The position numbers were made by a program, and so were the translations under genes. 64,000 nt of DNA from Utricularia gibba (lineage: Eukaryota; Plantae; Magnoliophyta), in NCBI GenBank assembly GCA_002189035.1, contig NEEC01000004.1, positions 744,001-808,000 of the forward strand, written 5' to 3'. Below are positions 58,472-64,000 of the stretch, piece by piece (within the stretch, counting starts at the first letter, position 1; every line of letters begins with the position of its first letter). The notes beneath the pieces were generated by a model that saw nothing but the letters and a program-made list of their open reading frames with translations, was not told the DNA's origin and did no database searches.

Positions 58472-59079
58472 GACGAGCTCCGCAAATTCTCATTCACGAT
58501 CACAAGCTTATTATCCTTCGCTACATCTCTGCTGTCTTTTATAATTTTAAAGTGTTTTATGGTGGGCTCTTAATGGGCCTATTGAGCCCATCACACAATA
58601 GTGGACCCTGAATTGATCCATTTACAATTTTGTCGCATTTGCTTCTCCGTCTCTCTGCTCTGTAAATCAGTTCTCAATACAATCTCCGAAAAAGAAGAGC
58701 TTCTTTTCCGCCATCCTTAGCATCTTTTATGCAGACAGCAGCCAATGTGGATGGGAATTCACCGGCGACCTTAAAAGTGTTTTTTTTTTTTGTTGTTGTA
58801 ACCCATAGATCGATAAGGTAAGGTGTTGTGTACGTTAACCCATTGTGCCAAAACCAGAGTACATAGAGAAGACAAAATTGCTGTCACCACGTGGAAAACT
58901 TGATGTGGGTGCCCGATTTTTTTTGGCGGCGGGTGGATAGCTGAATTTAATGTTGCCCATCAGAAAGGCGTTGTTTTCAAGGGCCGAGAATTGAGTCAGA
59001 CTACGCTAACTCCCCCCGATTCCGTACTCTGGTTGCTTCGCTAATTCCCTCCTGATTCTTTAGCATCTGGGTAGCTTCC

Positions 59080-60901
59080 ATGGCGTCGAAGGGAGAAACT
59101 GGTGAAGTGGTTGAGGGTTCAGTGTCCGGCACTTGGGAGGAGTTCAAGGGCACTCCGGGACCCTTTTTACCAACAATTTTGATGCTGTTGATTTGGATGG
59201 GTCTGTTCATTTCATCGTTCTTGTTATAATGCTCTCCTTCGTTCTTCTACCACTTCCCAAAGCAATTGGGTCGGTATTTAGTACTCATCTTGTGGTTTTA
59301 GAATAGTTTTCAGCACTTTTCTGTGTTCTCAAGTTCGCGTTTTAGGTTGGTTACAGTGTGATGGGATTGCTTCTGATATTGATAGTCATTCCTATTGATG
59401 AAGAGAACAAATGGGGAATCAAACTGTGCAGGTGAGCTTTCAGGAGATTACATGTTGTTCTTCTTTTGCTTATTTTGTTCTCTGTGTTTCAGGATTGGTT
59501 TTCACATCCATGGTTTACAATAGTTGTTGCATTTGCAGGTATTTGTGTCAACGAGCTGTTGGATATTTCCCGGTGACTTTGTATGTAGAAGACATCAAAG
59601 CCTTCGATCCCAATGAGGCGTATGGTAAACTTCCTCTTCATCTTCAAGATTGCTCCTTTTTTGTTATAGTATGCATTCTATGCCACGTTAGTTAGCTTCC
59701 TGATATGATTGGTGGATATTTCAGCTCATCTATCTGTGTTCCTTGAGAAATATTTATTGGCAATGTGTTGACTTGAGGTTCAGTTCACACGACGTCGCAA
59801 TCTTCTTCTCAAGTCCATTGACACACTATCACCATGTTCTTACAGTTTTTGGATATGCACCACATTCTGTTTTTCCATTTGGAGTTGTTGCACTCGCCGA
59901 CCTTACAGGTTTCTTGCCTCTGAGGAAAATCAAGGTCCTCGCCAGCAATGCCGTACGTCTCCTCCCAATAAGTGAATCGCTTTTCAATTCATCCTCTCAA
60001 TGGCAATGAATGCAACTTATACCACACTGTGGGGTGACTCTGTCAGGTATTTTACGTGCCATTCATGAGACATATCTGGTCCTGGTGTGGATTAACATCT
60101 GCAAACCGGGAAAACTTCAGTCGTCTTCTGGCCTCCGGTTACAGCTGCATAATTATACCAGGGGGGTTCAAGAGGCAGCTTATATGCAACATGACTCAGA
60201 GGTTTAGTCTTGTGCACCTAAGGGAATTTCTTCCTGCATCACATTCTCATTAGATGGGCCACTTGCATGTGTAGGTCGCCTTCATTCTGAATAGGCGTGG
60301 ATTCGTGCGCATTGCCATGGAGAACGGCAAACCCCTGGTCCCTGTCTTCTGCTTCGGTCAGGTGTAACCCCACAAAACACAGTTTGAAGATCATGTAGGC
60401 TATCTGTACCTTCCCCTCACCTGAAACTCATCTCAATGCATATTCACTGCAGACCGATGCATACAAGTGGTGGAAGCCTACAGGGAAGCTCTACGTGGCC
60501 TTTTCTCGAGCCATCAAGTTCGCCCCAATCGTGTTCTGGGGTGTTCTGGGGTATGTCTGAACGACAGACACCTCCGCTGCTGCTGCTTCTTACATTTATC
60601 CTGATTCTTCACCTTATCTGCCCCTTGCAGTTCACCAGTTCCGTTTATGCGCCCCGTCCATGTTGTCGTCGGGCGGCCCATTCCTGTCCAGAAAAACACT
60701 AATCCAAGTGCAGAGGAGGTCTGTCCTGTTCCATTAAAAAGAACCACCTCATTGCTTCTGTATGCTGGTTGTGTTTCTGAATCCCGAATGCGATCGCAGG
60801 TTGCCCAACTCCATGCCCAGTTCGTCCAAGCTCTGAAAGATCTGTTCTACAGGCAAAGAGAAAGAGCAGGATATCCCAACTTGGAGCTCAGAGTTGTATA
60901 G
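59080..60901 (+). CDS. DGAT2: Diacylglycerol O-acyltransferase 2; needs +1 G at 59199-59201
   Basis: [28 protein letters not shown][S]VHFIVLV; [10 protein letters not shown]; [11 protein letters not shown]; [10 protein letters not shown]/(GGVQEAAY); [23 protein letters not shown]; [10 protein letters not shown]; ends LELRVV*. Confidence 0.92.
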
Positions 60902-61111
60902 GAAATGTGTTGTAGAAGGAAGTTAGTGGAGACTGGAGAGCATGAATGAAACCTTGGGGCTTGGGCTCATAATAAGATTTGCCTTCTTTTTCCCTGCACA
61001 TCAAATATAAATATGGAATTTTGAAATTATTAAATTCAAATTCATATTTCTATATATTTTGTAATTATACGCACTATATATTGTGATGGGCGGTCCAGAT
61101 CATATCTCCGA

Positions 61112-61238
61112 GGCCCATGGGCCCAGCCCATTACAAAATACGAATCTAGGGTTCTCGAGGGACTGGATTCCCGATCTATAAAGGCGAGCGGCGAGTGCAT
61201 CAAAACCGTCTTCGTCCATTGGCAGCTGTGTAGGGTTT
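61112..61238 (+). promoter_or_regulatory. Ribosome-biogenesis-type promoter (site II x3, telo-boxes, TATA) of the snoRNA cluster
   Basis: GGCCCA 61112-61117, TGGGCC 61118-61123, AGCCCA 61125-61130; TAGGGTT 61147-61153; TATAAA 61177-61182; TAGGGTTT (reverse complement of AAACCCTA) 61231-61238. No protein gene follows. Confidence 0.75.
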
Positions 61239-61299
61239 TTCTTCTCTGTTTCTCGATGTGCTTCTGCTCCTGCCAATCCTTGTTTTCAGTTTCGTTTTC

Positions 61300-61375
61300 C
61301 ATCAGTGATGAGAAATACTGCAACAATATGAATGGTGAAATCCAATGATTCATAGTATTTAAGTCTCTGATGATG
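61300..61375 (+). ncRNA. snoR13: Box C/D snoRNA, snoR13 type (dual guide)
   Basis: Terminal stem CATCA/TGATG; C box GTGATGA 61305-61311; D' ATGA 61328-61331 preceded by ACTGCAACAAT (complementary to recalled 18S GUUGUUGCAGU); C' ATGATT 61345-61350; D CTGA 61367-61370 preceded by GTATTTAAGTC (complementary to recalled 25S GACUUAAAUAC). Confidence 0.85.
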
Positions 61376-61452
61376 TCTTATTCCCAAAAACTTCTTTTTT
61401 TTCCCGATCTGCATTCCGGTTTATTGCTGTATTGCCATATTCAAAATTTACT

Positions 61453-61600
61453 CTATGGCTCCATCTCGAGTCAGCAGCAGGTGCCTAATTTTTTGGTAAC
61501 CCGTCTGCCGCTTGGAGCCCATAGTGAGGTTGCCAGTTTGAAGATCCATGGAAGCCATGTTTTTGTTAATTTTCCATGATACAATTTACTGGGTACAATT
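61453..61600 (+). ncRNA. Candidate box H/ACA snoRNA (about 148 nt, two hairpins)
   Basis: Hairpin 1 ATGGCTCCA..TGGAGCCCAT; weak H box ATAGTG 61521-61526; hairpin 2 CCAGT/ACTGG lower stem and CATGGAA/TTCCATG upper stem; pocket TTGAAGATC + ACAATT complementary to recalled 18S AAUUGUUGGUCUUCAA; ACA at 61595-61597. Confidence 0.65.
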
Positions 61601-61634
61601 TGCTTAACGGTTTTCCTTTTTTCTCTTCTTCAAA

Positions 61635-61716
61635 TTGGAGATATGACGACGCAAATTGGTCCGTGTTTCTGACTATACGTGACAGATAACCCCTTTTTTC
61701 AAGCACTGATCTCCAA
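61635..61716 (+). ncRNA. U18: Box C/D snoRNA U18 (SNORD18)
   Basis: Stem TTGGAGA/TCTCCAA; C box variant ATGACGA 61643-61649; hallmark ATTGGTCCGTGTTTCTGA (guide to 25S AAACACGGACCAA, D' at 61669-61672); D box CTGA 61706-61709. Confidence 0.92.
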
Positions 61717-61758
61717 AAAAAAAATTCTCTTTTTTTGTGTTTCTTAAAGTTTGCAAGG

Positions 61759-61861
61759 TGAAGGAGCTCCATGATTGTGTACCCTTATGAATGGGGGAAT
61801 ATACGCTATGCTGACACTCAAATGAATCGAAACTTTTGATTTACAAATGAGAGCTCCTTCA
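61759..61861 (+). ncRNA. U54: Box C/D snoRNA U54 (SNORD54) type with degenerate C/D boxes
   Basis: 11-bp stem TGAAGGAGCTC/GAGCTCCTTCA; C-like ATGATT 61771-61776; guide AATATACGCTAT 61798-61809 (complementary to recalled 18S AUAGCGUAUAUU) then G-CTGA 61811-61814; D-like ATGA 61847-61850. Confidence 0.82.
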
Positions 61862-61887
61862 TCCTCATTCCATCATGTCTTGTTATT

Positions 61888-61986
61888 CTTCTGCTGTGAT
61901 GATTCATGAACAAACTTCGCATGTCAGACTTCAGAGATTTCTAAAAAAATCTATGAGAAGACAGCTTCATTTTCCCTGAGCAGAAG
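61888..61986 (+). ncRNA. snoR58Y: Box C/D snoRNA snoR58Y (yeast snR58) type
   Basis: Stem CTTCTGC/GCAGAAG; C box GTGATGA 61896-61902; guide GCATGTCAGACT 61919-61930 (complementary to recalled 25S AGUCUGACAUGU) before D' CAGA 61932-61935; D box CTGA 61976-61979. Confidence 0.85.
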
Positions 61987-62881
61987 TCTCCATTCCCCGC
62001 TAGCCTTTTTTCGCTTGAATGTATCTTCCTCTCTTGGCAATTAATCTTGCAGATCCATGGTGTTTAGAGATGCTTCCTCCCAAAGCTTTCCTGGAGGAGA
62101 ACCCCCTAAATGCAACAAGCTTCTACTGGAGAAATTTGCTTACATAATTCATACCGGTGCTTCTGATTCTCTTGTAGACCAAAACAAACTGTTCTGTCCG
62201 CGCGACCGAAAAGATTCAAGTATATAGGACTCGGTCCAAATGTTTAGATCGCAAGTAATGAAGATAGATTTTTTGTTTTAATATTTATGTTTCATTGTGA
62301 AAACCAGTTTTTATTGTTTTTAATTTTGAAATTATTTTTAAAAGCATATTTATCTACTATGAGATACTGTTTCCTAAGTATTAAATAATTATGAAAAAGG
62401 AATGTAATGGCTCATACTTCTTGAGTATGCCAGTATAATATTAAAATATATGAAAATTAATTATTTCTGTTTATTTGAATGTAATAAATAAGACATGGTG
62501 ATTGTCATCATCAACACATGTCATTGAACTTAGGAATACTCACATGTCATTAACTGTTTTTTTAAAACAAATTATTAATATGTAGTTAGTATCTAATATT
62601 ATAATGTTTTGTTGAGTATAAAATAATATAATATAAATACATGTAATAGATAATCATCACCAGTTAGATATCGAACCCTCACGTTATTTAGCATGAAATT
62701 GTATTATTACCAATTTCACACCGGAAAAACAGGCTCTGTTGGCTCTGAATCTCAATTACATGTGGCGGGGATGAAGCCCGCCGTGCCGTGATCACGAGTT
62801 CGGCCTTGATCTCAGAGAAGAAAGAACCAATGGATTATTGCCACATCAGACACAAGGAATCCCCAAGGCTGTGTGCGGATC

Positions 62882-63633
62882 TCACTTGACGGTGGTGAGG
62901 CTGAACGCCGCCGCGGCAGTTTTGAGCTCCGCCTGCGCAGTCTGACTCCCAACTGCACCTTCCTCCTCCAAATTGGTGCTACTAACACATCATAAACCCC
63001 AGATTACACCCACCCAGATCGCCATTTTGCTAACAAATTACTGCTGCTACTACTACTCCTACCTGGAAAGACAGGCATCCGCGTCTAAGAGAATCTGGTT
63101 TGCTTCATGATCGAGCTGGGCGGCGTCGTAGGCCTTGAAATTATCATTCTCAGAGGCGGTCGGCATCATCCTCATCATCCTAGGGTCATTAGAATGATCG
63201 ATGTTCATTCCCATCACATCACTACTAAGCTGGGTAATCATTTGGGTGTGTATCATACCATCATCACCAACACCGCGGCTGTTGTTTTTGTAGTACTCCA
63301 GCTGGGCGTAAACGTGTTGCAGCTCAGCTACCGCGCACCACGTGTCCTGCATCAGCTTGTTGATAACGTGTTTGCAACCCAGAACCGGGAACCTCCGGCG
63401 GATCTCCGCCTCGTAGATCATCGACTTTATCGCGTCGTGCTTGTGGTCCTCTCTTGTGAGGCTGTCCAGCGTCTTCGTCACTTTGGAGACGCCGAACAGA
63501 CGGTGGACGTTCTGGAAGTTCTGGAATCAGAGGCTGGGAAATAAGGGGCCAGCGTACAGTCGGGCGTGCATTTTCGGCGCTGATATTTGCAGGCAGCGCA
63601 GGCGGGGGCCGCGCCTCCTTTGTTTACTGTCAT
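62882..63633 (-). CDS. LBD27: LOB-domain protein, LBD27/SIDECAR POLLEN-like, 2 exons; needs +1 C at about 63523-63524
   Basis: MTVNKGGAAPACAACKYQRRKCTPDCTLAPYFPA then, in the shifted frame, QNFQNVHRLFGVSKVTKTL..AIKSMIYEAEIRRRFPVLGC. GT-AG intron 63062-62979. Exon 2 ..AQAELKTAAAAFSLTTVK*. Confidence 0.88.
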
Positions 63634-64000
63634 CGGCGTTTTCGACCAGAAAATCGCGGCGAGCGCATTATATTTTGGGTTTGCTTCTACGAAAAAAGGC
63701 ATACGTGGCATCCGGATAAGGCATCTTGACCAAGTTTTAGTATGATTTTTCCTTTTTTAATAATAAAAAGTTGGACTGTTGCCGAGTCTTCCGTACAACT
63801 ACTATAAAATTTAAATCACTCACCATTTTGTTAAAATTGATTGTTACAACCACCACAAGGTCATTATCTTTTTTTAAAAAAATATTTACAATTATTTCTA
63901 AAATTCCCAAATCCAAAATTAACTCAAAACCCTATATAAATATATTTATTAATTGCATATTTTCTCTGTAGAATTCATATTTCAAGAATGCAAAATATAG

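Follow-up and report, generated by a model that had tools for sequence, protein, structure and literature searches.

The locus and its neighborhood

The window, i.e. the whole 64-kb stretch of Utricularia gibba DNA that was analyzed, contains a DGAT2-type acyltransferase gene on the plus strand (59000-60990), which was recognized by a Pfam DAGAT match on its last coding part. RNA contigs reveal three introns in this gene, all of the GT..AG type (60359-60449, 60550-60629 and 60717-60797), and place the end of its transcript near 60990. Further downstream, ORFs on the minus strand (63059-63711) encode the CAACKYQRRKC...APYFP motif that is typical of LOB-domain (LBD) transcription factors. Judging from this motif, they probably represent the downstream neighboring gene. 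The DNA between the snoRNA and LBD-like genes is silent except for a low-depth 194-nt RNA contig (62745-62938), found in run X1 only.

The intergenic region after the DGAT2-type gene holds a polycistronic box C/D snoRNA gene of the kind typical of plants, composed of the four long-known families snoR13, U18, U54 and snoR58Y. The original prediction had counted five RNAs here. The four box C/D units are real, as follows from their Rfam matches, boxes and guides, whereas the fifth, an H/ACA candidate, is unsupported. An Rfam scan of the whole 64-kb window at the gathering thresholds returned exactly three matches, all on the plus strand and all within 61300-61986. A permissive scan of 61100-62250 added SNORD18 (U18) as the fourth unit. 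Three of the four C/D units are hence placed above the gathering score and U18 is matched below it (cut-offs: snoZ199, 47 bits; U54, 40 bits; snoR64/Z200, 45 bits; SNORD18, 41 bits). Going by the Arabidopsis guide table, the names given beforehand to the units and those of the Rfam families are synonymous or denote functionally equivalent RNAs.

The four box C/D units

The terminal stems, C/D boxes and antisense guides that had been predicted are all present. The units have a C box near the 5′ end, a D box near the 3′ end and a terminal stem, with deviations in U18 and U54. Antisense elements of at least 10 nt are located directly upstream of D or D′, and they form guide duplexes of 10-14 bp in which the target nucleotide lies opposite position 5.

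snoR13, filed in Rfam as snoZ199, occupies 61300-61375 on the plus strand (64.4 bits versus a cut-off of 47). Its C box GUGAUGA (61305-61311), D′ box AUGA (61328-61331) and D box CUGA (61367-61370) are enclosed by a 5-bp terminal stem. Of its two guides, the one at D′ is directed at 18S U615, and the one at D, which does not deviate from the Rfam Z199 consensus, at 25S U3301. In all RNA contigs, from four runs and three studies, an additional G stands between 61304 and 61305, right before the C box at the 5′ margin of snoR13, and closes a gap relative to the Z199 consensus. Its lack in the genomic sequence may be a 1-nt deletion in the window assembly, or the sequenced individual may differ.

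U18 extends over 61635-61716 on the plus strand. The SNORD18 match (61638-61713; local E-value 4e-4) scores 33.5 bits and so falls short of the cut-off of 41. The C box at 61643-61649 reads AUGACGA, a single deviation from the usual AUGAUGA (consensus RUGAUGA), and the same letters are read in the RNA contigs. This variant box may explain the sub-threshold score. The D′ box is found at 61669-61672 and the D box CUGA at 61706-61709, and the terminal stem comprises 7-8 bp. The D′ guide is directed at 25S A661. The D′ element matches that of rice and wheat U18 (supplement, PMC5122169). The identity as U18 was accepted because the guide is identical to the one in these species and pairs exactly to 25S A661. 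The A-run after U18 (61715-61724) differs in length between runs, with one additional A in X5 and two fewer in X9.

U54 covers 61759-61861 on the plus strand, with an Rfam core at 61765-61855 (44.5 bits versus a cut-off of 40). Its C box AUGAUUG and D box AUGA are both weak, but they are family-typical in the Rfam consensus. The D′ box (61811-61814) belongs to a guide for 18S G599, and the outer stem is perfect over 11 bp (61759-61769 with 61851-61861).

snoR58Y, corresponding to Rfam snoR64/Z200, is located at 61888-61986 on the plus strand and reaches 89.4 bits (cut-off 45). It has a C box GUGAUGA (61896-61902), a D′ box CAGA (61932-61935), a C′ box (61953-61958), a D box CUGA (61976-61979) and a 7-bp terminal stem. 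Its D′ guide is directed at 25S C675, and also at U676 in Arabidopsis. The D′ guide together with the CAGA box is letter-for-letter the D′ element of rice and wheat snoR58Y (supplement, PMC5122169). The D-side element varies between species.

Single-base differences between the runs are scattered across the locus, and the functional guide duplexes contain none of them.

The nomenclature of these RNAs requires some care. The names snoR13 and snoR58Y come from Arabidopsis, while Rfam files the same RNAs under the rice-derived Z199 and R64/Z200. The RiboMeth-seq mapping of Arabidopsis gives the names SnoR64.1, AtsnoR58Y, SnoR58Y-1 and SnoR58Y-2 for the guides of 25S C675, and SnoR63.1 and U18 for those of 25S A661 (PMC8053127). 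The name snoR64 is also used for a different Arabidopsis RNA, a member of the snoR19/20/38Y cluster whose target is 25S U2884. The name is consequently ambiguous, whereas the guide is unequivocal.

rRNA targets of the guides

The rRNA of this species is absent from the 64-kb window. For a pattern that joins the U18 and snoR58Y guides in reverse complement, a scan of metagenome contigs returned 118 loci, and in all of them the two elements are exactly 4 nt apart. The flanks of five loci (L061, L072, L085, L005 and L056) are identical to Arabidopsis 25S 652-695, which was taken base by base from the RiboMeth-seq supplement. These seed-plant-like loci span 25S A661/C675, but not the 18S region around 600 or the 25S 3′ end. 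The 18S pairings were computed on non-plant eukaryotic rDNA, with the numbering of Arabidopsis.

On Arabidopsis and seed-plant-like 25S, the D′ guide of U18 forms 13 bp with 657-669, which brings A661 to position 5. The D′ guide of snoR58Y pairs with 25S 671-684 by 12 Watson-Crick pairs and 2 G-U pairs, and here position 5 is C675. On the 18S, the D′ guide of U54 forms 12 bp with 596-607, where position 5 is the G of AAUAG (site G599), and the D′ guide of snoR13 binds 612-622 through 10 Watson-Crick pairs and 1 G-U pair, with the second U of GUUGU at position 5 (site U615). For the D guide of snoR13, 9 contiguous pairs were found with the 25S U3301 region of a non-plant lineage only; in that lineage the pairing site follows the U18 target at a distance of 2624 nt, versus 2640 nt in Arabidopsis. 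A convincing target for the D-side guides of U18, U54 and snoR58Y was not found in the available rRNA sequences.

All of these sites have been mapped in Arabidopsis, where A661 and C675 display a MethScore of about 0.98 and 0.97, respectively, and where 18S G599 was assigned to U54 and both 18S U615 and 25S U3301 to SnoR13 (PMC8053127). The Arabidopsis table also lists snoR77Y as the guide of U582. As U582 is taken by this other guide, the 18S sites discussed here correspond to yeast 595 and 611. When the guides were shuffled, the observed duplex runs were equaled in 2-5 of 300 trials each. That four guides fall on the mapped Nm sites of guides with the same names is far stronger evidence than this shuffle result.

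When the snoR58Y guide was compared with bacterial and archaeal genomes and viral contigs, five chance matches were obtained, with no snoRNA in any of them. L006 and L113 were considered as plant rDNA reference and rejected, being incomplete or rearranged. The LSU match of L005 leaves out most of the model, and L006 contains the 3′ end of the 18S without its 5′ part. The plant-like contigs L005, L006, L113, L033 and L004 may be rDNA fragments, pseudogenes or misassemblies.

Promoter and precursor transcript

Upstream of the units, a motif scan revealed a Site II cluster of four motifs (TGGGCC, GGCCCA twice and AGCCCA) at 61112-61130. It is followed by a TATA box (TATAAA, 61177-61182, plus strand) about 31 nt upstream of the earliest contig start, at 61208 in X5. 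A telo-box, TAGGGTTT (the reverse of AAACCCTA), is present on the minus strand at 61231-61238, just downstream of the likely start site, and is one of four exact telo-boxes in the 64-kb window. The TeloSII promoter of plant polycistronic snoRNA and ribosomal-protein genes is defined by the telo-box AAACCCTA and Site II elements TGGGCY in either orientation (PMC4660826). The locus thus has a TeloSII promoter with a TATA box.

Assembled contigs from long-RNA libraries of three studies (four runs) were mapped on 60300-63300. They delineate an unspliced precursor of about 1.1 kb (61208-62312) that contains all snoRNA units and continues for about 300 nt as a 3′ trailer. The span is covered by one contig each in X1 (61223-62312), X2 (61225-62281) and X5 (61208-62278), while X9 provides overlapping pieces over the same span; the single full-span contigs come from two studies and the overlapping pieces from the third. 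No splice joint occurs within 61208-62312 in any contig, and contig depth is zero at 61007-61207 and 62320-62700. All units are accordingly found on one precursor. The polycistron with a Site II/telo-box promoter, as originally predicted, is borne out both by the upstream motifs and by RNA contigs that cross all units unspliced. As the contigs have no direction, the transcript was assigned to the plus strand from the orientation of the snoRNAs and the promoter. The signal derives from RNA and not from DNA carry-over, since the neighboring DGAT2-type gene is spliced and both flanks are silent. Furthermore, the snoRNA gene is a unit separate from the upstream gene, as the transcript of the latter ends near 60990 and the depth in between is zero.

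A route from this promoter to modified rRNA can be proposed. Transcription would start at about 61208-61225 under the control of the Site II, TATA and telo-box elements, and the unspliced RNA of about 1.1 kb would end at about 62280-62312, in an AT-rich stretch. By analogy to other plant clusters, endonucleases would then cut the spacers, after which exonucleases would trim the fragments to the terminal stems, which is the processing described for plant clusters (PMC2875012). In this manner snoR13/Z199, U18, U54 and snoR58Y would be released from the precursor and presumably accumulate as mature RNAs. Assembled into fibrillarin snoRNPs, they are predicted to direct the 2′-O-methylation of G599 and U615 in the 18S and of A661, C675 (possibly U676) and U3301 in the 25S rRNA of this species.

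As a whole, the locus is best explained, and with high confidence, as an independent RNA polymerase II gene that yields a polycistronic pre-snoRNA with four C/D snoRNAs. What the analysis shows is that the units match known families, that their guides pair with the targets, that promoter motifs are in place and that one continuous transcript is made. The four families and the gene layout were already known and only the locus itself is new, so that the novelty is low. The chief value lies in annotation: an apparent gene gap turns out to contain a transcribed four-snoRNA gene that can be tied to five rRNA methylation sites.

The long spacer and alternative readings of the locus

The linkers had been described as short and mostly pyrimidine-rich. 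This applies to two of them (26-48 nt), but the spacer between snoR13 and U18 (61376-61637) is, at 262 nt, unusually long in comparison. It was here that the fifth RNA had been placed, and a functional, uncatalogued H/ACA (pseudouridylation) snoRNA in this spacer would raise the number of genes to five. Its length would suffice for one snoRNA of about 140 nt and could accommodate a lost or unconventional RNA, and clusters that mix C/D and H/ACA units are common in plants (PMC2875012). The core of the candidate is a 72-nt hairpin with an internal loop (61453-61524, plus strand), whose folding energy of -28.1 kcal/mol is somewhat better than that of shuffled sequences (z -2.1; 4 of 200 shuffles fold as well). 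An H box or ACA after this hairpin was not found, however. The spacer contains a single ANANNA motif, at 61579, and ACA occurs only at 61581, inside this motif, and at 61595, 10 nt after it. Because no hairpin of 45-95 nt fits between such an H box and ACA, the hairpin-H-hairpin-ACA layout is impossible. The ACA at 61581 does directly follow a short hairpin, yet this would-be 3′ hairpin has only 8 predicted pairs (9 with one bulged C), is devoid of a pocket and folds no better than shuffled sequence (z 0.0). Rfam returned no match at E-values up to 10, either for the 262-nt spacer alone or for the spacer within a 1.15-kb search. Neither the two hairpins with an H box and an ACA three nt from the 3′ end nor similarity to a known family could thus be recognized, and the H/ACA gene was rejected on its box layout, its folds and the lack of an Rfam family. 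What remains of the fifth RNA is one modest hairpin, most likely spacer sequence without a function, or the remnant of a lost snoRNA, instead of a working H/ACA guide. A functional H/ACA RNA at this position is considered very unlikely.

The same hairpin could alternatively be read as a microRNA precursor, which would turn the locus into a dicistronic snoRNA-miRNA gene. Such genes exist in Arabidopsis and rice under TeloSII promoters (PMC4660826), and the precursor does contain a hairpin of suitable size, about 72 nt. Within the would-be miRNA duplex, however, the stem contains an asymmetric bulge of 5 nt and several mismatches, and the miRNA families of Rfam have no match in the spacer, which renders this reading highly improbable. 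Equally little credit is given to a reading in which the 1.1-kb RNA serves chiefly as a messenger or as a long non-coding RNA with a function of its own, its snoRNA-like parts being incidental or decaying. In favor of this, the abundance of the full-length RNA sufficed for its assembly in each of the runs, and its 3′ trailer holds small ORFs, such as one of 56 codons at 62057-62227. The ORFs of the locus lack a Pfam match, though, and they lie behind a leader of about 850 nt that carries three or more upstream ORFs starting with ATG (61370, 62019 and out-of-frame ATGs in the snoRNAs). Moreover, the four snoRNA units retain family-level scores and intact guides, and the differences between cultivars or runs spare all functional guide duplexes.

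Neighboring targets of the co-transcribed guides

The four guides can be arranged in two pairs according to their targets. G599 (U54) and U615 (snoR13) are 16 nt apart on the 18S, and A661 (U18) and C675 (snoR58Y) are 14 nt apart on the 25S. The predicted spacings of about 16 and 14 nt consequently hold on natural rRNA sequences and match the Arabidopsis mapping. In both pairs the duplexes abut without overlap: 596-607 and 612-622 on the 18S are separated by 4 nt, and 657-669 and 671-684 on the 25S by 1 nt.

Of the 3655 pairs of guide families in the Arabidopsis Nm-site table, 67 have targets within 16 nt of each other. The probability that four random families include two disjoint neighbor pairs is about 0.001 per cluster, and about 0.06 across the genome if some tens of clusters per genome are assumed, for a pattern that was picked out after the fact. 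Among the subset of published Arabidopsis clusters that was compared with the list of 67 pairs, no other case of neighboring-target pairing was encountered. The two-pair pattern is real and mildly unusual.

It had been suggested that co-transcription coordinates the modification of neighboring rRNA sites, which is speculation. It is regarded as unlikely that action on two pairs of abutting rRNA segments is what keeps the four guides together in a single transcription unit. If it were true, the equal and simultaneous supply of both partners would aid an ordered or cooperative methylation on the nascent pre-rRNA. The point of wider interest in the grouping of guides for neighboring sites is whether cluster membership in plant genomes reflects target proximity.

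Comparison with known snoRNA genes

The locus resembles the TeloSII clusters of Arabidopsis and rice, in which units on one strand with short spacers form an intergenic gene with one unspliced Pol II precursor (PMC4660826, PMC2875012). Site II, telo-box and TATA box likewise precede the units in these clusters, and nothing essential differs. In contrast to them, the telo-box is located just downstream of the probable start here, and one spacer extends to about 260 nt. The predicted targets (G599, U615, A661, C675 and U3301) are the same as those of Arabidopsis SnoR13, U54, U18 and SnoR58Y (PMC8053127). The D′ variants AUGA (Z199) and CAGA (snoR58Y) are shared with the Arabidopsis and rice counterparts, whereas U18 differs from Arabidopsis and rice U18 by its AUGACGA C box and its score below the Rfam cut-off.

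Outside the plants, yeast U18 and snR58 act on the equivalent sites of the 25S/28S rRNA, which are likewise separated by 14 nt, and human SNORD54 guides the counterpart of 18S G599. Unlike the single polycistron described here, yeast U18 and snR58 and human SNORD18 and SNORD54 are encoded by separate intronic or independent genes.
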